Assembly (NCBI GenBank): GCA_002811645.1
Contig: PDIP01000011.1
Location: 66,435 to 130,434, forward strand
Reading direction: 5' to 3'
DNA length: 64,000 bases
Origin: Corallochytrium limacisporum Hawaii
Taxonomy: Eukaryota; Protista; Pluriformea
The notes beneath the pieces are model-generated. The model did not search any database and was not told the DNA's origin. It worked only from the letters and a program-made list of their open reading frames with translations. Shown here one piece after another: positions 6,004 through 47,319 of the stretch (the stretch's first letter is position 1; the number at the start of each line of letters is the position of its first letter). The translations under genes were made by a program, and so were the position numbers.

Positions 6004-7743
6004 ATGGCCACGAAACAGCAAGGCCAGGACACTGCCATGGGGTCCCAATTTGACCTGCTCACAGCTCACTCAGCGTCAAGTTTTACGGATTCCGATCAAG
6101 GAGTATCTCTAGAAGTCAAACATATTTTGAAAGGCCTTTCTCAGTTCGGGAAGACTGTCGGCGGCGCCTTCGCATTCAAAAAGGTCGATCTCCAGGGAAA
6201 TGAATTGACAGATGTTATCATCCTGGAAGAGTACGAGCACCTGGAGCATATAAACCTCCGTGACAACTTACTGCGGGATCTGAGGACTCTGCAGTCCATT
6301 ACACATCTCTTGATTATCGATGCGAGCGGCAATAAGATTGAGTCTTTGCAAGCGGTGCCCACCCTTCTGAGCCTGGTACAATTGGATCTTAGTTCCAACA
6401 TGATCACAGGTTTGGAAAACATCTCTCGTTTTAGTTCCCTCCGGACATTGGATCTCTCTTCTAATGGTATAACATCCATCGATGAACTTAAGGAGTGCAA
6501 TTCTCTGGAGACTCTGATCCTGGACAACAATCGTCTGCGGAACCTCGGAAATATTGAGCTACCCGGCGTGCAGACTCTGAGTGTCAGAAACAATGCTATC
6601 CAGTCCTTTGTGGGGCTGGAAAACTTTCCTAGCCTAAACAAACTAACAATGTCCGACAATGGACTTCGCAGTGTTAAAACCATTGTCCACGGTCTTGCTT
6701 GCCCACTAGTCGATCTCGACCTGGCCGCCAACGATCTCAACGATGTGACCGATCTGACAATATTAATGCAGTTTCCGTCCTTAAATTCCCTGAAGCTGGA
6801 AGGAAATCCCATTTGCTCCATGCCATCGTACCCTGCTAGCGTACTCTGTCGCCTAGAGCGCCTGAGCTTTATGGACGGATCTGTGATTACGGAGAAAAGC
6901 AGAGTGCGTGTGCAGAACGAGATTGACCCACCCCTTCACGTCCTGCTCGCCGTGGAGCATGCCAACCGTCTGAAGAATTACATCCGCAGGCCTATCCGCA
7001 TTCATGCCCATGACCTGAACGATTCCTTATCCATGTACCGCCCTATTGTGCTTGCAGGGCCCATGGGGGCCGGTAAGAGCGTTCTCATGCAGCAACTGGT
7101 CGAGAGGCATCCAGAAGGTTTTGAAATCACCAACACATACGTGGCTCTGGGCAAGAAGCCTGACGCAGATACTGCAGATGCTAGCGATCAGCTCGCTCAC
7201 GAAGGACAACATGTTCATTTTGTGGAGGATGACGAGATGCGGACCATGATTGACAAGGGCGTCTTTGTACGAACGGCCGCGATTGCCTACAGGACGTTTA
7301 GCGGTATATCAGTCGATGACGTTGAAGAGATTGCTGGCCGGCAGAAGCATGCTCTGATTGAGTGTGACCTAGAGGGCGTGCAGCTTCTGAAGCGCACATA
7401 CCTAAATGCGTTCTATGTATTGATCATGCCGCCGTCCTCCGCCGTGCAGGAACTCCGTCTCCGAGGTAAGATGGACGGGGAAGTTCAGGAACTGGCGCTC
7501 AAGGTTGCCAAGGCCAACTTCCATCATGATACTGTTTTTGACGAAAACAAGGCTCTGTTTGATCTTCACGTGGTGAACCATGAATCCAACGAAGCCTATC
7601 GGAGACTCTTCCACTCCCTCGCGCACGCCCTCCTGTTGGAGAAATGCAAAAGTCGCAATCGCGTCGATTGCCCGCAGCCCACCCAAGGTGTCAGTTCAGC
7701 GACCAACTCGGGTCCAAGCAATTCTGCGACATTGATGACATGA
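6004..7743 (+). CDS. LRGUK: Leucine-rich repeat and guanylate kinase domain protein (axonemal LRGUK-like)
   Basis: SDS22-like LRRs with an LRRcap (LEGNPIC...Y...L..LDG), then RPIVLAGPMGAGKS P-loop and a GK-like domain. First ATG at 6004; the ORF track starts at TTG 5971. Confidence 0.85.
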   Translation: MATKQQGQDTAMGSQFDLLTAHSASSFTDSDQGVSLEVKHILKGLSQFGKTVGGAFAFKKVDLQGNELTDVIILEEYEHLEHINLRDNLLRDLRTLQSITHLLIIDASGNKIESLQAVPTLLSLVQLDLSSNMITGLENISRFSSLRTLDLSSNGITSIDELKECNSLETLILDNNRLRNLGNIELPGVQTLSVRNNAIQSFVGLENFPSLNKLTMSDNGLRSVKTIVHGLACPLVDLDLAANDLNDVTDLTILMQFPSLNSLKLEGNPICSMPSYPASVLCRLERLSFMDGSVITEKSRVRVQNEIDPPLHVLLAVEHANRLKNYIRRPIRIHAHDLNDSLSMYRPIVLAGPMGAGKSVLMQQLVERHPEGFEITNTYVALGKKPDADTADASDQLAHEGQHVHFVEDDEMRTMIDKGVFVRTAAIAYRTFSGISVDDVEEIAGRQKHALIECDLEGVQLLKRTYLNAFYVLIMPPSSAVQELRLRGKMDGEVQELALKVAKANFHHDTVFDENKALFDLHVVNHESNEAYRRLFHSLAHALLLEKCKSRNRVDCPQPTQGVSSATNSGPSNSATLMT

Positions 7744-8714
7744 AAGAAACCAGGACCTCGCATCCCAGCAATAGATATATGTATTCATAACCAACCGCCA
7801 TCCCCCGGGTTTGCAATCTTCCCATCCGCTCTCTGTTTCGGGCCTCGCCCACTGAATGTCACAGCACAAGGGAACGACCGCTGAGGAAATTGGTGTGGAG
7901 GGGGGGGAGGTGCGCGGGTGATTATTCACTCCCCTCCTGTGACGTCTTCGGTTCTTGTTTCGAGCCCTTTAATGATCAGCCTCGCCGAGAACTGCCACCC
8001 CAGAACCGCAGCCCGAAAACTGCCAACTTCCTCTCCCATTCCCTCCCCCACCAAATTCAAAACGGAACGTCTGCCTAAATCTTGTGCGCAAAAGCCACCC
8101 CAGCTCCACCTCGCTGCTGCACCCGGGGGCAAACCGAGCGGTAATGGGTGTACTACCTTGCGGCGTCCCCTTTCGTGCCATCTTTCCCTTCGTCGCAACT
8201 GGCCCGCTTCGAGACCAAAAGGAGCGCAATCCTGGAAGGGAGTGAAATTGGCAATCATTAAGGGAAAAATACAGGGAGAGTGGCCATATCTTACCAGCAA
8301 TTGTCGCCCCGCAGGTGCGGGAGCAACAGCAGCAACCATAGAACTAGAGGCGGGAAGCCTTGCGGAAGAAGGCAGTCGGTGGTGGAAACTTGGGAGGGAG
8401 ATCTAACGGGTAGGCCAAAGGTCAGTGAGGCCTAGCGTGCTGTTGATTGATTCATAGATGGGAAAAAGATGGTCCTCGTCGAAATGGCATGATTTGGGAC
8501 ATTGACAAAGGTATGAAGGACAGCACAGTGCCTTCACTTACTGCGGGATTTGCGTCTGTGAAGGATCCAGTCGAGCGAGTAATCGGCGCAGTTGAGAGAG
8601 GGATCTGTACGTTGTATGCGACAAGTCTTCGGTCATGGTGTCTGGATCTCTTAACAGCTGGGCAGCGTTCAGCTGAGCTTCTGTGCGCTTGTTCATATAA
8701 ATTACAATTGTAAT

Positions 8715-11700
8715 ATGTCCTCAGAACGGGTCTTTGGCAAGCCGAAGGCGCAACCGGTGTTGCGCAGCCCTGCTGGCAAACAGGCTCAGTCACGTCTCAC
8801 CGCGGAGGATGAGATAGCTCGGTTACCCAGTGGCAGCCATGTGCGCACATCCAGGCTACATAGTTTCAAGAAGCCGATTAATTCGGAGTCATCACATGGT
8901 ACACCATATGGATCGCTAACCAGCGCTGGTACCCTGGATCGTACTCCGCAGAAGTCGAGTGTGACCGACGCAGACCTTTCGCCGACCATGCAACCGACTT
9001 CAGCGGAAGCTATCAATGTGAACAGTGGCGCGTCGGCCAGTAAAGACACTGATCATGAAGCTGACAAAGCCGTGTCACAAATGGATCTGGGATCGTCCGT
9101 GAGTGATCCGCGGGCAGAGCAAAACAGTATCGACGACGAAACTCGGCCACTGATGCCGCTGAGCCGGAGACGGAGCTTTGATTCAAACAGCACCGCTACG
9201 CACGGCGGTGGTGGGACGTTTCTCGGGCTGGCTGGTGAACCACGAATTCGACTTGAAGTTCTGGGACAGGCTTCGCTCAGTGTGATTCTGGGACTGACCT
9301 ACTTAAGCCTGATCATGGCTATCGTGTCCACGGTCTTCGTCAAACCATTCTACCGATTCGAGACGGATATTCTGTGGACCTCAGAATGTATTGACGGAAA
9401 TCCACCGGCTCCCAGAAGCAATCAGGATGTCACTTCCTGCCTGGAAACCAACGGGACTGTATGGAAGGTGCAAGCTGTCGAATGGAGCTCACTTCGAGGG
9501 CCCCCACAGCTCAATGTGGATTTGAGCATGATCATTTCGGAGAATGACGAGGAACTCCGTGAATGCGGGGAGCTTGACTTTATCATGCCAGAAGCCCCTT
9601 TCAATCAGCCTCAAGGACATAGACATATGACAGCACGGAAACAGGAAGTGGATCATGATTGGGGCGTGATGAACAGCGATCATCGGGACATCATTGCCGG
9701 CAGCGAAGACGGGAAGATCGTGCGCTTGCATTACAATATGACCCTGTACCAACTGAATTGGAAGAATGGTCATGCAGCCAAATATCCTTTTCGCCGTGTA
9801 GAAGGTCTGTACATGGATGTCATGCTTCGAAACAACACCTCGACAACAGCCCGAGTGGCCAGTACAGCCACACTAGTGCGCCGCGTAGACTTCTTAAGCC
9901 CGGATCTGACAGTTAGTCCGGACATCTTTCACGGTTGGGCTGTGGCCATTGAATTCAATATGAAGATCAGCCATCACAGCCATGCAGCGTTCAGCATTAG
10001 CCATCGCAATGGGCGCTACGAACTTGCTGACTTGATCATTCGTGGTGTATTGCTATGCATTAGCATTGGTTTCGTGGCATACTACATGCATCGACTCTTC
10101 CGATATGAGGGCAGTGTAGCCCTTTGGATGAGTGAACAGAAGTACATTTTGGTGGCGCTTCTAGGGTTGGTCAGTTTCCAGGATCCTCTCTTTGCCTGGT
10201 CAAAATTAACACTCTCCATGACTGCGGATGTTCTGAGTATGATATGCATCAGTGCTGGGGTAAGTACAATTGGTACTTCTTGGCTGCTTTTCGCAAACTT
10301 AATGCGTTATGAACTGGATGAGCCGCTCCCGGAGAACTTCAGTAGAGGGAAAGTGCTGTGGGGATTCGGATGTTTCACCATGCTGGTTGGTTTCCATCTG
10401 ACAGCATGGATCCTGTTTGCCAGTGACCCAGATGCCCTGGGCTATGAGAAAGTGTTGCGTCCCTTAAGTCAACTAGTTATCTATCCAGTCCTGGTTGCCT
10501 CTCTAATCTGGCTCTGTGTGTCAATCTACCAAACACGCAAGACTCTGAGATCCCAACCCTACCTACGAAACCGGTTCCGCCACCTGGCGTTCAACTTTTA
10601 CCTGATGCAGAATGGTCTGGTCGTCATGTACTGGATCATTCAGAGTGCGGCCTACCTCTTGGCATCATCCCAGATGGAAGACTTTGTAGCGTCTGACGAG
10701 TTCGGTATGAGCGATACGGGTACAGTGATTATGATCAGTGTGTATCTTTACATGCTAGCATACGTGTACCTACCCGTAGATAATCGTACCATGATCTACA
10801 ACAAAATTAACAATGTCATCAGTCACCATTTTGGCGTGGATTACGGCAGCACCAGCGGCTCCCACTCTAGTTTGAGTGCCGCACCTATCGACGGTCGCCT
10901 CACACCGCGGCATGCCGCGTCACGCTCCGTCTCAGGTTCCCCGTCGCCGCTGGCTCGGCGACAGTTAAACCACCGAAATCCGAGGACAGCGTTCAGTTTG
11001 TGGATCGCACGCTGGCTCCTTGACTACGCTGAGCAGGCATTCTACGATCCCGAGGGTGTTACCACCGTCAGTGGCTGGGGCAAAATGGATCCAGAGAGGT
11101 ACCGCTTCGAGATTGCCAACTTCATCGTGCACGAGGAGACCGATTGTAACTGTCTGGTAGCCAAATGTGGTTCAAACATTGTGGTGGCCTTCCGTGGCAC
11201 GTCAAGCACAACGAATTGGATGAGTAATGCACGAATGCACCGCAAACCGATCCCCCGTGCCGAAGTACCGAACCAAAGGGCCCATGATCTCATGCGTCAT
11301 GCCTTCCAGAGTACCTTTCAGAGGGCCACGGTCCATTCCGGTTTCTGGAATATGTTCAAAAGCATCGAGACCACTCTGAAGGACACCCTGTTGGAGCTGA
11401 CATCGGCCGGTGGTATCAGGCACGTCTACTTCACAGGCCATAGTTTGGGAGGCGCCTTGGCTGTCCTGGCGGGCAGCCATCTCTACCGCTTCCTCAGTGC
11501 GCCTATTGCCATATACTCCTTCGGGGCACCCCGAGTGGGGAATGCTGGCTTTGCGAACATGGCTGATATGGCCGTGCCCTGCACCTACCGCATTGTTATG
11601 GATGGTGACCTGGTTACGAATTTGCCCAAACACTGGCATTTCGGGAATCCTTATAAGCATTCGGGTTATGAGATTATTGTCGATGAGCTTGGCAACGTTT

Positions 11701-11969
11701 TGTTCAGTGCCACGTTCGTTGAGAAGGCCTTCCGATTACGCGGTCGTACATATCTGAGCAGCCATCTCGTGAGCGCATACCGTGCTGCCTTAAATGAAGC
11801 GCTCATGGAACAGGGTCTGGATCATATCAACCCTCAACTCAAGCGCATCTATCCGATCCCATTCGATGAGATTGAAATGCCCAGTCGCATCGGCCCTGGG
11901 CCAGAGTATGATCGCATCAGTGCCAGCCTTTCGTGGCTCCAGGACATCAACGCCGAATCCCTTGCATAG
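8715..11969 (+). CDS. Multi-pass membrane protein: TMEM181/Wntless-like 8-TM module fused to a C-terminal class-3 lipase
   Basis: 1084 aa. One TM, a ~225-aa luminal domain, then 7 TMs with W..EQK...LL.L..FQDPLF and YLYMLAYVYLP (TMEM181-like). Lipase motifs IVVAFRGT, VHSGF, FTGHSLGGALA, YSFGAPRVGN, DLVTNLP and SH. Confidence 0.85.
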   Translation: MSSERVFGKPKAQPVLRSPAGKQAQSRLTAEDEIARLPSGSHVRTSRLHSFKKPINSESSHGTPYGSLTSAGTLDRTPQKSSVTDADLSPTMQPTSAEAINVNSGASASKDTDHEADKAVSQMDLGSSVSDPRAEQNSIDDETRPLMPLSRRRSFDSNSTATHGGGGTFLGLAGEPRIRLEVLGQASLSVILGLTYLSLIMAIVSTVFVKPFYRFETDILWTSECIDGNPPAPRSNQDVTSCLETNGTVWKVQAVEWSSLRGPPQLNVDLSMIISENDEELRECGELDFIMPEAPFNQPQGHRHMTARKQEVDHDWGVMNSDHRDIIAGSEDGKIVRLHYNMTLYQLNWKNGHAAKYPFRRVEGLYMDVMLRNNTSTTARVASTATLVRRVDFLSPDLTVSPDIFHGWAVAIEFNMKISHHSHAAFSISHRNGRYELADLIIRGVLLCISIGFVAYYMHRLFRYEGSVALWMSEQKYILVALLGLVSFQDPLFAWSKLTLSMTADVLSMICISAGVSTIGTSWLLFANLMRYELDEPLPENFSRGKVLWGFGCFTMLVGFHLTAWILFASDPDALGYEKVLRPLSQLVIYPVLVASLIWLCVSIYQTRKTLRSQPYLRNRFRHLAFNFYLMQNGLVVMYWIIQSAAYLLASSQMEDFVASDEFGMSDTGTVIMISVYLYMLAYVYLPVDNRTMIYNKINNVISHHFGVDYGSTSGSHSSLSAAPIDGRLTPRHAASRSVSGSPSPLARRQLNHRNPRTAFSLWIARWLLDYAEQAFYDPEGVTTVSGWGKMDPERYRFEIANFIVHEETDCNCLVAKCGSNIVVAFRGTSSTTNWMSNARMHRKPIPRAEVPNQRAHDLMRHAFQSTFQRATVHSGFWNMFKSIETTLKDTLLELTSAGGIRHVYFTGHSLGGALAVLAGSHLYRFLSAPIAIYSFGAPRVGNAGFANMADMAVPCTYRIVMDGDLVTNLPKHWHFGNPYKHSGYEIIVDELGNVLFSATFVEKAFRLRGRTYLSSHLVSAYRAALNEALMEQGLDHINPQLKRIYPIPFDEIEMPSRIGPGPEYDRISASLSWLQDINAESLA

Positions 11970-12443
11970 TAGCTGTTCCGATGACAAGGCCAAATCAGAT
12001 GCTCTCGTTTGCTGCCTTGGCAAACTAACCATCACCACTAGTATACATTAATTTACTTACGTGCATTATTATACAATCGAAGCAGTTGTAGTTGACTTGT
12101 TTATTGGGTCCCCCTACCGAATGGGCTGTTGTTGAGAAACACGGGTGTCCTTGCCTTGTCTTCCAATAAACCAGTTCCTTGCCCTTCTTTCTCCCCCTCC
12201 CCCCGCCCCCCCCCCTCCGGTGGGGGGCGGGCGATCCATTTGTCAAGGGGAATGCGGAAAGCTATTTGGCCGCCGTTGCATGTCCGGACGGTCCGTACCG
12301 CTGCCGTACTCACACAAACAGGCTGATGTGGCACGTGACGAGCGATAGTGAGCCTGGACATCAGACTTCCGTATACAGAACACACAACTATGATGGGTAT
12401 GACATAAGACCTGGGCACTTTTCGTCATTCAACAGAACACGAT

Positions 12444-14387
12444 ATGTTTGAGTCGTTCAAGAAGGCCCTGATGGGCAATGAAATCAATCGAGAATTCCAA
12501 ATAGGACCACAGATCGCTTCTGCCGGGCCAGAGGGGTTGTGGCGCATTCATGATGGAAAGGAGAAAAAAACAAACAGACCGTGCGCAATATGGATCCTCG
12601 ACAAGCAGCAGCTCTTGGACCGAGGAGTAGTCGGTGGCCTGGCGATGGACGCTGTACTGAAGATCTGTCGGAACGAGATCCAGACGCTCAGCAGGGTTCG
12701 ACATCCTGGTTTTCTGATGGTTATGAAAGGGGCATGTGAGGACAGGACCTCCCTAATATTTGCAACAGAACCAATTCACGTCAATGTTGCCAATATGTTG
12801 GGGCAGTGCCCCAATCTGGCACCTATCCCACAGAGGCTGCTGGATGCACAGCCTCAATCCAAGAAAGACGATGTCAGTCTCCGCTACGGACTAGCCAAAG
12901 TTGCGGAGAGTCTGAGGTTTTTGCATACCAATGCACATATTGTTCATAGAAACATACAGCCGGGATCACTGTTCATCACACCATCCGGAGATTGGAAAAT
13001 TGCGGGTTTGGCTCACGCACGTTTTGTGGAGGAATTGACAGGCACATCTGCTCACGAACGCATTGACTACGACCTCGACAGTGTTCCGGGCCGTCATTCA
13101 CAGACTCTGCTTCTAACCCGACCAGATCTCAACTTTGTGGCGCCTGAATGTATCCAGGAACACCGCGCAACTGCAGAGGCTGACATCTTTTGTTTGGGTC
13201 TGGTCCTTTACGCCTTTTACTGCCGCGGTCACAGCCCGATCAACTGTGGTCCCACGGACATTGAATCCTACCAGAATCAGACCCGCAAGCTCTTCCAGAA
13301 TTCAGAATACTATATCACATCGCAAACCACGCTACCGAATGATGTCTTGCAAACGGTTCTGGCCTGCTTGCGGGAATTGCCCCAGATGCGGATCAGTCTC
13401 GATCAGCTATTGCAGTCACCCATGTTCGACACTATTGAGGTGCTGTGCCTTCGCTTTCTTGACAACTTTCTTGCCAAGGACCAGGCTGTCAAGATTGATT
13501 TTCTCAAGAAACTAAGCACTGTGCTCAAAAACTTCCGGCCGGATATGCGTGTGCAGAAGATCCTTCCGCCACTATTCACGGAAATGAAGAATGAAGGTAT
13601 GGAAGTGTATTGCTTGCCTCTGATTGTTCGAGCCAGCTCAAATTTGGACAACATCACCTTTGAACGCTCAGTCTTTGTACACATTCGGGAGAGCATCCGC
13701 AAGGCCCAACGCGCAGACATGCTGCAGGCCATCATCCGTCTTTCTGGCATCTTCTGTGAGAAGCTCGATAAGCCAAATTTTGAAGGGTATGTGATGCCTG
13801 CTCTCATCACGGCCTTAAAATCTGGTAATCCTCAGACCCAATGTCTGTGCATCATGCACCTGAAGGACTATCTTACTCATATCGATGCTAAAGTCGTGGA
13901 GAAGCAAATTATCCCCACTTTCTGTTTGCTGCTAGAGACGACAACCTCGGCGTCAGTACAGAAAGAGTGTCTGCAGGCCCTGATTGACAGCTCTGAACAT
14001 CTCTCACCAAGCAATGTATCTCAGCAGATTTTGCCTTCCATGCAAAAAACAACGCCTCTGGATGAGGTTAACATTGTTGGATTTACAAGAGTAATTGTGA
14101 AATTCGGCAAACAAAAATCAAGTGATGGCAACGGTGCTTTTCTAAGCAATGATGTAATTATTGACCTGCTGGTTCCCATGCTACTCAATTTGTCACGAGA
14201 TCCCAAATTGCTAACAGCAGGTAGGCACAAGACTGTCTTTGATGGGATAAAGACTTTGATCATACACATTGAGCAATTGCAGAAGAGTATATTAACACAG
14301 AGAAAGCGTACAGGCACATCCAAGTTAGAGGTGACCAACCCAAGACCCACCCCCATCTCAAGTCAGAGTGCGAATTTGTTGGATTAA
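12444..14387 (+). CDS. SCYL2: SCY1-like pseudokinase 2 (CVAK104-like) with HEAT repeats
   Basis: N-terminal GN.I.REF.IG.QIASAGP..LWRIHDG, LSRVRHP, FLH.NA.IVHRNIQP and GDWKIAG, followed by helical repeats. Confidence 0.88.
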   Translation: MFESFKKALMGNEINREFQIGPQIASAGPEGLWRIHDGKEKKTNRPCAIWILDKQQLLDRGVVGGLAMDAVLKICRNEIQTLSRVRHPGFLMVMKGACEDRTSLIFATEPIHVNVANMLGQCPNLAPIPQRLLDAQPQSKKDDVSLRYGLAKVAESLRFLHTNAHIVHRNIQPGSLFITPSGDWKIAGLAHARFVEELTGTSAHERIDYDLDSVPGRHSQTLLLTRPDLNFVAPECIQEHRATAEADIFCLGLVLYAFYCRGHSPINCGPTDIESYQNQTRKLFQNSEYYITSQTTLPNDVLQTVLACLRELPQMRISLDQLLQSPMFDTIEVLCLRFLDNFLAKDQAVKIDFLKKLSTVLKNFRPDMRVQKILPPLFTEMKNEGMEVYCLPLIVRASSNLDNITFERSVFVHIRESIRKAQRADMLQAIIRLSGIFCEKLDKPNFEGYVMPALITALKSGNPQTQCLCIMHLKDYLTHIDAKVVEKQIIPTFCLLLETTTSASVQKECLQALIDSSEHLSPSNVSQQILPSMQKTTPLDEVNIVGFTRVIVKFGKQKSSDGNGAFLSNDVIIDLLVPMLLNLSRDPKLLTAGRHKTVFDGIKTLIIHIEQLQKSILTQRKRTGTSKLEVTNPRPTPISSQSANLLD

Positions 14388-43696: not shown

Positions 43697-44149
43697 CGCG
43701 CGTGTGTGTTTTTATGTGTGACTGACCAAAGAGACAGAAGACAGAGAGAGCGAAAAATGCCGGCGTGCTTATTTTTTGAGCCCGGTGCAACTTGTCCCTC
43801 GGTGTCTATTTTCTGAAAAAAATTGTTTGGCCGTGAATTCTTTCATTTTTCATTGTGGCTGATGTGACGGAGAGAGAGGATAAATTGGGCTGATGAGAAA
43901 AACGGTTCGTGAACGGAGAGTTTTTTCTTTTCTTTCTTTCGTTTTTTATATGTTTGGAGGGAGTGTTGTGACAGAAAATATCACGCTGTGTTTTTATGCC
44001 ATAGTTCTTATGCTGTGTGCAGTGGTGCGTGTGTTTTTCCCCCGCGGGGGGAGGGACGCAGAGAGAGAGAGACAGAGACAGAGAATAGAGAGGACACGCC
44101 CCTTTCAGTTTTCCCTGGTATGGTCACGCTTTCGGGCCAATCGATACCA

Positions 44150-44674
44150 TACTGGCGACTCTGCCACGGTTGGACCCCACTTTACTGACGACTCTGCCAC
44201 GGTGGTGGTGGACCACCAGCTCACCCTACTGGCGACTCTGCCCGTCCATCACCACCGGCTAACAGACTCAACCCACCCCCCTCTCCCGGTGGGGGAGGGG
44301 GGCACCGGGCTTTTACTGGCGACTCTGCTCGTGATTTGGCCCCACACCTGGCGACTCTGCCGTTCGAAGGAATTGGGTAGAAACTCAGTGGGAAGAAGAA
44401 GAAAAAAGTTGTTGTTCCATCTACTAGTCTTTTGGCTTTTCTTTGTCCCTGCCCAACACCTCCCTCCCCCATCTCTGCCTCTCTCACTCTCTCTCTCTCT
44501 CCGGCCGGTTAATTTGCATTACCGCAAAGGAAGAGAGGAGGGGGGGGGGGGTGGAGCACGCGCCCGCCGAGCATGTCGACTCTGCTGCCCTCCCCTCCCT
44601 CCCCCCCCCCGGGGAAAATAAGGAAGAAAAATGAAGAAAGGAAGGGTTGGATGACCCATACTTGCGACTCTGCC
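44150..44674 (+). promoter_or_regulatory. Same-orientation cluster of the 16-bp motif TACTGGCGACTCTGCC (6-7 copies)
   Basis: Copies at 44150, 44183, 44227, 44314, 44346 and 44659, plus a degenerate copy at ~44573. The repeat is certain; the regulatory role is inferred. Confidence 0.55.
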
Positions 44675-44780
44675 GTTATCGGCGTTTTCGGGAGTGCGGG
44701 AAAAAATGGGGAGAAAAAACCTTGGACGAACGCGGGCAAACGTGGCATCCCCGTCTGCAGCAGCAGCAGCAGCAGAAGCA

Positions 44781-45707
44781 GTGAGTGAGTGAGTGAGTGA
44801 GTGAGTGAGTGAGTGAGTGAGTGAGTGAGTGAGTGAGTGAGNNNNNNNNNNNNNNNNNNNNNNNNNNNNNNNNNNNNNNNNNNNNNNNNNNNNNNNNNNN
44901 NNNNNNNNNNNNNNNNNNNNNNNNNNNNNNNNNNNNNNNNNNNNNNNNNNNNNNNNNNNNNNNNNNNNNNNNNNNNNNNNNNNNNNNNNNNNNNNNNNNN
45001 NNNNNNNNNNNNNNNNNNNNNNNNNNNNNNNNNNNNNNNNNNNNNNNNNNNNNNNNNNNNNNNNNNNNNNNNNNNNNNNNNNNNNNNNNNNNNNNNNNNN
45101 NNNNNNNNNNNNNNNNNNNNNNNNNNNNNNNNNNNNNNNNNNNNNNNNNNNNNNNNNNNNNNNNNNNNNNNNNNNNNNNNNNNNNNNNNNNNNNNNNNNN
45201 NNNNNNNNNNNNNNNNNNNNNNNNNNNNNNNNNNNNNNNNNNNNNNNNNNNNNNNNNNNNNNNNNNNNNNNNNNNNNNNNNNNNNNNNNNNNNNNNNNNN
45301 NNNNNNNNNNNNNNNNNNNNNNNNNNNNNNNNNNNNNNNNNNNNNNNNNNNNNNNNNNNNNNNNNNNNNNNNNNNNNNNNNNNNNNNNNNNNNNNNNNNN
45401 NNNNNNNNNNNNNNNNNNNNNNNNNNNNNNNNNNNNNNNNNNNNNNNNNNNNNNNNNNNNNNNNNNNNNNNNNNNNNNNNNNNNNNNNNNNNNNNNNNNN
45501 NNNNNNNNNNNNNNNNNNNNNNNNNNNNNNNNNNNNNNNNNNNNNNNNNNNNNNNNNNNNNNNNNNNNNNNNNNNNNNNNNNNNNNNNNNNNNNNNNNNN
45601 NNNNNNNNNNNNNNNNNNNNNTGAGTGAGTGAGTGAGTGAGTGAGTGAGTGAGTGAGTGAGTGAGTGAGTGAGTGAGTGAGTGAGTGAGTGAGTGAGTGA
45701 GTGAGTG
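44781..45707. repeat. Long (TGAG)n tetranucleotide satellite spanning an assembly gap (N 44842-45621), preceded by a short (CAG)n
   Basis: Pure TGAG repeats on both sides of the gap. Confidence 0.95.
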
Positions 45708-47319
45708 TCTATGTGCGGGCGTGTGTGCAGAGCCGATCGTGTGTCCGCTCCCCGCTTCTGTCTCTATCGATCTCTCCCTTTCTGTGTCTCTCTGTCCGTG
45801 TCCCTCTCGGGGTTGTTCTCTCTCCTTTTTTTTCCCGTTTTTTCTTTACCTTTTTTTATTACTGGTCAAGTACAAAAAGAGAGGAACCGGTAAGAATCTG
45901 CCCTGTCCGAACAATCACAGCAACACACACACACACACACACGCAATCTCCCTCTCCTGCTCTCTCAGTTTCCCCTCTCTCCGTCCGCTTTGTTAGGTAC
46001 GTCCAGTACCCTCCTTTTCCTGATCCCCCCCCCCCCTCTCGTCTTCCTCCCATCGCTCCGGAGACACCAAAGTTTTCTTTGTCTTGCTCCCTACTAGTGC
46101 CCCATGTGTTCAATCTGGCGGCCGTCCTAACGCAGTCAATATTCCATACTAAATATACCCAATGTGAAAGTCATAAGGAACACAAGATCACAGAATGGCA
46201 CGCCGCTTGCCCGAATTGGCGTGTGGATGGGGGCCGCTAGTGTTGGGGGTATTTTCACCTTTTCATCTATTTTAATTCCCCTTGTCCTCTACCCATTTAT
46301 TTCTCTTAACATAAATACTACGGTACCAAACTTGTGAATTCCCATCATCCAACGCCAATACACAACCCGCGCCGGTGTGGTGGGACGGTTGTCTCTTTCC
46401 TTTTTGTGTGTGTGTGTGTGTGTGGCACAAAGGACCGTTTATTATAGTTGGTTTGGTTTCCCGGGTCGGTGGTCTCTCTCTCTTACCCTCCCTCCCCCTG
46501 TCTTGCCCTTTCTTTTTCATTGACCCATCACCACCACCACCACCACAAAACAGAATAATGGGAAATAGCAGGTTGTTTACCAGTGTGTACGATTCTACTC
46601 CGTATATTCTCAGTACCCATCGGTTCACGTGCCGTGGCGAGACATCCCTCCTTGTTTTCTCTAGTCTCCCTCTGCTGCGCTTCGCTCCGCTTACTCGCTC
46701 GCCACTTCAAAGGCAACTCCTCCGCCCAACCCCCGGTGTCTTCTCCCTTCCCAAGTGTACGACCGGACAACTTGGGAAAAATGGCCACGAAGAAAAATAC
46801 CCAAAACCCAAGAAAAGAAGAAGAAAAGAACCAAAACGGATCTGAGTTCGCCGGCCATCTTCAGAACCCACACCACCGCTCCTGCAGCCAACGCCGCAGC
46901 CAAGCTCCAAAGAAAACTTTCAAAATCAACAAAACTAAAAAAGACAAAACCAAAAATAAAAACCAGAACGAAGGGAGGAAACAAAGCGGAGAATAAAACT
47001 GAACACCCTAGATATTGTAATTAATCGATTTAAAGGGCGCGAACTGTCTCACCGGCAGCACAGTTGGTGCCGCCTGGACGGACCCGGATCAGTCACTGTT
47101 CGGGCATAGTAGTACCTACCGAGTTGTCTTGTCTCTGAAAAAGACGCGAGATGCTGCGATACTTTATTATCAAGTTGGTAGCTGTTATACCCTTAGTCAG
47201 GTTTTGCTGCGTCGAACATTGTTAAAAGTCGACTGCACAAGAGAAGTTTCCTCTTCCATAATTTCTAGTTAATGCACCTTGTGATCGACCGTGGACCAGG
47301 AAGACCACAAGCTGGATAG

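Follow-up and report, generated by a model that had tools for sequence, protein, structure and literature searches.

A WLS-like transmembrane module fused to a class-3 lipase in Corallochytrium limacisporum: a member of a widespread family of predicted membrane-tethered lipases

Gene and transcript

The stretch of DNA analysed here, referred to as the window, comprises 64,000 nucleotides of the genome of Corallochytrium limacisporum Hawaii (assembly GCA_002811645.1, contig PDIP01000011.1, positions 66,435 to 130,434 of the forward strand). Positions 8715-11969 of the plus strand hold a single open reading frame (ORF) of 1,084 amino acids and a stop codon, with an ATG start and no intron, which encodes a predicted membrane module of the TMEM181/Wntless (WLS) type, a Ser-rich linker and a class-3 lipase domain, in this order. 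The open frame spans 1,104 amino acids without an internal stop and extends just 20 codons upstream of the ATG.

Two public runs (X1 and X2) contain the locus and were compared with the window over positions 7400-12900 (5,501 letters). In run X1 the ORF is spanned, gap-free and without joints, by one contig (Table 1), whereas coverage is absent at 7768-8503 and at about 12083-12270 in both runs, and the neighbouring genes lie on separate contigs. The RNA nature of the two runs is an automated guess; they were taken as transcript assemblies because their coverage is gene by gene with empty intergenic DNA, unlike that of a genome assembly. Run X2 is identical to the window (zero differences) and covers both halves of the ORF, broken into two contigs. 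Between run X1 and the window, 15 single-base differences were counted over 5.5 kb; seven of them fall within the ORF, four of these being synonymous. Run X1 thus represents a different allele or strain, and the organism has been sequenced from two or more strains or alleles. The gene appears to yield a single mRNA. The preliminary description of this DNA had placed both domains in one frame and had named two separate transcripts as the contrary outcome; one ORF and one probable transcript contig, that of run X1, were found to cover both domains.

The probable 5' leader (8572-8714) contains two upstream ATGs. The first, at 8616, shares the frame of the main ORF but meets a stop before 8715; the second, at 8635, is out of frame. 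These may represent upstream ORFs.

Domain layout

Hydropathy analysis predicted one transmembrane (TM) helix, TM1, and seven further hydrophobic segments between residues 437 and 688, i.e. eight TM helices. The loop between TM1 and TM2 comprises 226 hydrophilic residues and carries three N-glycosylation sequons, at N246, N341 and N373, and three cysteines, two of the latter in family-conserved columns. The region ahead of TM1 is probably disordered and, with its placement taken from the topology of WLS, would be cytosolic. The seven-helix core matches Pfam WLS-like_TM (PF06664) with 43.4 bits against a cut-off of 28.3, over positions 1-246 of the 247 in the Pfam model; the locus scored 47.4 bits in a genome-wide six-frame scan with the same profile. 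Between TM8 and the lipase domain, residues 689-760 include 12 serines (22% Ser and Thr). Both Pfam matches, to WLS-like_TM and to Lipase_3, are well beyond chance. The coordinates of all features are summarized in Table 1.

The TM1, large luminal domain, seven further TM helices and Ser-rich linker of the preliminary description agree with the hydropathy profile and with the structure model, in which the linker is disordered, and the profile match expected for the TM region was obtained above the curated cut-off. The motif positions that it had given are exact throughout (LWMSEQKY, 10122-10145; LLGL, 10158-10169; FQDPLF, 10176-10193; YLYMLAYVYLP, 10743-10775; GHSLG, 11436-11450).

Table 1. 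Predicted features of the lipase-fused gene and of its two fused paralogues; positions are those of the window unless a contig is named
Feature	Residues	Positions	Strand	Basis or remarks
Probable mRNA		8572-12082	+	143-nt 5' leader, ORF and 113-nt 3' tail; contig of run X1, 3,511 nt
N-terminal region	1-189	8715-9281	+	31% Ser/Thr/Pro; hydrophobic segment absent; basophilic-kinase-like sites, e.g. RRRS at residue 151
TM1	190-210	9282-9344	+	Hydropathy peak 2.27; long helix at model residues 16-44
Luminal/extracellular beta-rich domain	211-436	9345-10022	+	Beta strands in model; GOLD-like by position
Seven-helix WLS-like TM core	432-688	10008-10778	+	Pfam PF06664, conservation, structure
Ser-rich disordered linker	689-757	10779-10985	+	pLDDT 29-44 for model residues 529-588
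Class-3 lipase alpha/beta-hydrolase domain	758-1039	10986-11831	+	Pfam, PDB sequence matches, Foldseek, pLDDT
Pfam Lipase_3 (PF01764) core	823-972	11181-11630	+	97.8 bits against a cut-off of 22
Putative catalytic Ser in GHSLG	910	11442-11444	+	Aligns to the GHSLG nucleophile of Thermomyces lipase 1dt3
Putative catalytic Asp in DGDLV	965	11607-11609	+	Aligns to the Asp of the NDIVP motif in 1dt3
Putative catalytic His in H-x4-Y	1017	11763-11765	+	Family conservation and usual His position in class-3 lipases
Second fused paralogue		Contig C235, about 140.6-143.8 kb (L002:2647-5787)	-	1,047 aa from first ATG; seven TM helices in bundle; Lipase_3 107.7 bits
Third fused paralogue		Contig C245, about 70.0-74.6 kb (L003:36-4604)	+	About 1,590 aa in open frame; TM1 preceded by a long N-terminal extension; Lipase_3 80.8 bits

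Structure of the membrane module

Residues 170-720 were modelled with AlphaFold2 on a 28-sequence family alignment (mean predicted local distance difference test, pLDDT, 76.6; predicted TM-score 0.79). In the model, a long TM helix at the N-terminus leads into a beta domain with about nine strands, after which seven long helices follow. In a Foldseek search of solved structures the top four matches were all human WLS (7drt_B, 8tzr_B, 8tzs and 7kc4_B; E 3.7e-10 to 1.1e-9, TM-score 0.53-0.61), in the comparison that the preliminary description had proposed; TMEM87A followed at E of about 1e-7, and ordinary G-protein-coupled receptors (GPCRs) were found at E above 1e-3. Alignment with VIA-align gave Z 20.4-22.4 for WLS, with a root-mean-square deviation of 4.4-4.8 Å over 392-402 residues (model residues 8-522, WLS residues 3-498), and lower values for TMEM87A (Z about 18) and GPCRs (Z about 14).

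Among predicted structures, two TMEM181 clusters ranked first (TM-score 0.65 by query and 0.68-0.74 by target, over 418-423 residues), followed by a WLS cluster (0.55 and 0.68); the next row, which lies outside the family, scored 0.39. A language-model feature search placed the same families on top, with TMEM181 first (0.92).

The WLS chain crosses the membrane eight times and begins and ends in the cytoplasm, and the luminal domain that separates TM1 from TM2 is built of eight beta strands (PMC10112924); WLS and TMEM181 were assigned to the GOST family by Hoel et al. (PMC9711517). WLS (also Evi or GPR177) therefore shares with the predicted Corallochytrium protein its eight TM helices and the beta-rich domain between TM1 and TM2, and differs in having no lipase. 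TMEM181, which carries the Pfam domains WLS-like_TM and TMEM181_GOLD, belongs to the same Pfam TM family, and its structural match extends over TM1, the luminal domain and the seven following helices; the animal TMEM181 clusters are 482-528 amino acids long and without an enzyme domain. As stated in the preliminary description for the animal members in general, a lipase family is not listed for any of the animal TMEM181 and WLS clusters of the structure atlas (449-528 amino acids).

By profile and predicted fold, the module is of the TMEM181/WLS type of GOST module, which upholds its first assignment, with TMEM181 apparently the closer of the two. The protein is not Wntless itself. No match to the Wnt domain (PF00110) was obtained in a profile scan of the genome, an absence that the controls could not validate; with no Wnt domain found, a role as carrier of Wnt cannot apply.

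Lipase domain

The C-terminal domain was modelled with pLDDT mostly above 90. Sequence searches of the PDB matched it to the Thermomyces and Rhizomucor lipases and to feruloyl esterase A (FaeA) at E 1e-13 to 1e-17, and the same enzymes were returned by Foldseek at E 5e-12 to 1e-8 (TM-score by target 0.6-0.76). Fungal class-3 lipases and FaeA are small, secreted enzymes. The Corallochytrium domain resembles those of Rhizomucor, Thermomyces and Aspergillus in fold and catalytic motifs (TM-score 0.72-0.75 by target), and differs from them in being tethered to an eight-TM module and in its predicted cytosolic location.

Conservation was counted over 29 fused family members, with the aligned subset used for each column. 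The triad residues are retained in 27 of 28 (Ser910), 24 of 24 (Asp965) and 22 of 24 members (His1017), and Tyr1022 in 23 of 24; the FRGT oxyanion strand (residues 826-829) is nearly invariant across the family. Because the triad and the FRGT strand are conserved in this way, the lipase looks active and kept so by selection. The catalytic completeness claimed in the preliminary description was thereby confirmed at the level of motifs: its 'DLV' is D965-L-V and its 'SH' is S1016-H1017, and both fall in conserved catalytic columns.

Predicted topology

With eight TM helices, both ends of the protein lie on the same side of the membrane. The short loops carry 11 Lys/Arg on the predicted cytosolic side versus 3 on the luminal side, and the lipase domain has zero sequons, versus the three N-x-S/T sites in the large loop. 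TM8 is connected to the lipase domain by a Ser-rich stretch of about 70 residues that appears disordered (pLDDT about 30). The lipase most likely faces the cytosol, because the termini of WLS are cytoplasmic, the Lys/Arg of the short loops are biased as described, the sequons and conserved cysteines are located in the large loop, and the linker follows TM8. A cytosolic lipase had been proposed at the outset, and is consistent with the eight-helix count, the N-in/C-in topology of WLS (PMC10112924) and the charge bias of the short loops.

Paralogues in the genome

The genome of C. limacisporum (24.1 Mb, intron-poor) contains 14 Lipase_3 loci as detected by profile scan. Two of the other long ORFs in the genome have a matching arrangement, in which a single TM helix and a multi-helix TM bundle, separated by about 200 residues of loop, precede Lipase_3 (Table 1), and the Ser-Asp-His triad motifs are intact in both. 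Pfam PF06664 did not detect the TM modules of these two paralogues on contigs C235 and C245. When the family profile was used, hhalign gave a probability of 98.3% for the TM module of the C235 paralogue and 98.2% for that of the other, and hmmsearch gave E-values of 6e-14 and 3e-33, the latter for the C245 paralogue and over nearly the full length of the TM module. The C235 paralogue carries the family signature as MPYIPTRYRQL. A genome scan with the family profile identified exactly three loci, all of them lipase-fused, and found no stand-alone copy.

A further ORF of 1,012 amino acids on contig C233 (L005:2634-5669, minus strand) combines some ten hydrophobic segments with a weak match to Lipase_3 downstream of them (30.4 bits). 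The WLS-like family profile did not match this ORF, which is therefore regarded as a multi-TM lipase of another design.

Distribution of the family

An exhaustive HMMER search with residues 170-720 in 1.84 billion representative proteins (E up to 1e-3) found 43 proteins, including the query. The relatives of the TM module were recovered solely by this search: a word-index protein search returned lipase-driven matches only when a single sequence was used, and nothing beyond the query when the family alignment was used. A lipase domain follows the TM module in about 26 of the 42 relatives, and one more is cut off within its lipase domain. Short fragments make up most of the lipase-less relatives; a few others seem to be genuine WLS-like_TM proteins of the stand-alone kind.

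Fused members among the Holozoa are the ichthyosporean proteins of Sphaeroforma arctica (SARC_06843) and Creolimax fragrantissima, to which the protein encoded in the window is also most similar (about 220 bits, at most 28% identity). Others were found in the amoebozoan Phalansterium solitarium, the oomycetes (stramenopiles) Bremia lactucae and Pythium oligandrum, the rhizarians Norrisiella sphaerica, Amorphochlora amoebiformis and Paulinella micropora, and the diplonemid Rhynchopus euleeides; the fusion architecture is present in at least four eukaryotic supergroups. The named fused members are all annotated as 'hypothetical', and two entries of the Joint Genome Institute are automatically labelled "Lipase (class 3)/Wntless-like, transmembrane domain".

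Signatures of the family within the TM core are EQ at the start of TM3 (residues 474-475), Q-D/N-P at its end (489-491), YLP closing TM8 (at P687), and a basic, predicted cytosolic loop between TM6 and TM7 around R620, with the consensus LPYxxTRYRQLSFRFF. R620 and P687 are each present in 29 of 29 members, Q475 in 26 of 28, and P491 in 27 of 28. When 27 fused members were placed in a maximum-likelihood tree (732 columns), the branches were long and the topology star-like. Only five of the 24 inner branches, all shallow, are well supported; neither vertical descent versus transfer nor the age of the three paralogues was inferred from this tree.

Four stand-alone WLS-like_TM proteins without a lipase (P0066, P0028, P0048 and P0067; Pfam 41-77 bits) are encoded on environmental contigs of up to 118 kb. 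Fused and unfused forms both exist outside animals.

The preliminary description had reported the fusion for this gene and suggested a survey of the architecture across eukaryotes. The fusion is real in the window gene; it is not peculiar to it, being widespread across eukaryotes and already visible in automatic labels. Whether it had been characterised before was also asked there, and full-text literature searches found no publication describing a WLS/TMEM181-lipase fusion. The WLS-like/lipase proteins are a real, ancient, widespread and uncharacterised family that combines known kinds of domain in an architecture visible to automatic annotation.

Other features of the window

At positions 44001-46000 the GC content falls sharply to 0.335, compared with about 0.5 elsewhere in the window. 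This tract is flanked by the perfect microsatellites (AGTG)15 at 44780-44841 and (TGAG)21 at 45622-45707, between which two overlapping ORFs of 263 amino acids lie in different frames of the plus strand.

Proposed function

We consider it probable (about 60%) that the family joins a GOST module of the TMEM181/Wntless branch, through a Ser-rich linker, to a cytosolic class-3 lipase that acts on membrane lipids. The module would consist of a cytosolic N-terminus, TM1, a luminal beta-sandwich and the seven-helix bundle, and would be followed by the flexible linker. Much like the four-TM diacylglycerol (DAG) lipases, the lipase would hydrolyse acyl esters of glycerolipids, and would do so in the cytosolic leaflet of the membrane that hosts the module. 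Anchoring in that membrane, sorting between Golgi, endosome and cell surface, and possibly regulation would fall to the GOST module; candidate means of regulation are the invariant TM6-TM7 loop with its basic residues, and phosphorylation of linker and N-terminus.

The sn-1 DAG lipases DAGL-alpha and DAGL-beta are the closest working analogy: in these, too, a multi-pass anchor is followed by a cytosolic Lipase_3 domain that acts on membrane lipid. DAGL has four TM helices and no luminal domain, whereas the Corallochytrium protein has eight predicted TM helices and a luminal domain of 226 amino acids. For the role of the module, it is relevant that GOST proteins are described as acting in trafficking at the Golgi, endosome and cell surface (PMC9711517, PMC12716839) and that the GOST cavity is lipid-filled and open to the membrane (PMC9711517, PMC10112924).

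Several points weigh against this reading. The identity to WLS is just 10-13%. The luminal domain matched neither TMEM181_GOLD (PF21885) nor WLS_GOLD (PF21883) in Pfam searches at E up to 1, and a profile scan with PF21885 gave no match anywhere in the genome; the family hidden Markov model did not find WLS or TMEM87 among PDB sequences at E up to 10. With these searches negative, the link to WLS proper is made only through the Pfam profile and the fold. The orientation of the lipase is inferred from homology and the positive-inside rule. Furthermore, the sequence does not disclose the class of substrate: a feruloyl esterase is among the nearest solved structures, along with triacylglycerol and DAG lipases.

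An alternative, which we regard as unlikely, is a receptor-enzyme similar to the GPCR-bigrams, in which a luminal or extracellular ligand, or a cargo held by the beta-sandwich and the 7-TM cavity, would change the bundle and switch the tethered lipase on or off, yielding a lipid second messenger. The arrangement of an N-terminal 7-TM domain and a C-terminal, predicted intracellular catalytic domain, often one that metabolises lipids, is that of the published bigrams (GPCR-PIPK, -INPP, -AC, -PDE and -TKL), and such 7-TM/enzyme fusions are typical of oomycetes and other protists, i.e. of taxa shared with the present family (PMC6033456). The most conserved element of the family is the basic loop (R620, 29 of 29), an expected site for contacting a cytosolic partner. 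On the other hand, no GOST protein is known to signal (PMC12716839, PMC9711517), and conformational change is poorly conveyed through some 70 disordered linker residues. The 7-TM part is here of the GOST/WLS-like type, with an additional TM1 and a luminal domain. The layout would fit a bigram, but the published types (PIPK, INPP, AC, PDE, TKL and AP) comprise no lipase among their accessory domains, and the word 'lipase' is absent from both core bigram papers.

Direct coupling of the kind put forward in the preliminary description, by which a WLS-type cavity would hold the acyl chain and pass the ester to the fused lipase, appears improbable to us. The palmitoleate of Wnt lies buried in the WLS cavity, which phospholipid otherwise fills (PMC10112924), the TMEM87A entry 8hsi is titled 'PE-bound', and the retention of the fusion over large evolutionary distances suggests that both parts work jointly. 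The geometry argues against such a transfer: the lipidated hairpin of Wnt enters WLS from the luminal side (PMC10112924) and the cavity is open to the membrane, whereas the lipase is predicted to be cytosolic and on a long, floppy tether.

A non-catalytic role of the lipase domain, as scaffold or lipid-binding pseudoenzyme in the manner of plant EDS1/PAD4, is very improbable; proteins of the EDS1/PAD4 type are among the weaker sequence and structural matches, and the pseudo-lipase was rejected on the conservation of the Ser, Asp and His columns and the FRGT strand in nearly all members and in all three paralogues. Finally, an annotation artefact, i.e. read-through of two adjacent genes or a mis-assembly, is effectively refuted by the stop-free frame, the single X1 contig, the zero differences of X2 over both halves, and the recurrence of the same domain order in dozens of proteins from unrelated assemblies.

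Evolution and significance

In one scenario, which we hold to be rather unlikely, the lipase-fused form would be ancestral for the TMEM181/WLS branch, and the animal stem would have lost the lipase and kept the eight-TM module, which would later have been recruited for lipidated Wnt. All three detectable copies in the Corallochytrium genome are fused, the fusion also occurs in ichthyosporeans, and a 2025 survey of GPCRs among close animal relatives, in which a lipase is not mentioned, did not detect TMEM181 (written GPR181) and WLS in choanoflagellates (PMC12716839). The stand-alone WLS-like_TM proteins outside animals, including Entamoeba, and the star-like family tree weigh against this scenario. 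If it were true, the module would originally have served a tethered hydrolase by presenting membrane lipid to it or by sensing such lipid, and a concrete biochemical hypothesis would be available for the orphan GOST proteins.

For most of the GOST proteins other than WLS (TMEM87, GPR107/108, GPR180, TMEM145 and TMEM181) no biochemical function has been established, and TMEM181 is in essence an orphan. The fusion described here is found in a unicellular organism related to animals, in whose genome no Wnt domain was detected, and with it the known protist fusions of a 7-TM module and an enzyme would gain a lipase type. As a conserved fusion, it provides a "Rosetta-stone" hint that the TMEM181/WLS branch deals with membrane acyl lipids.

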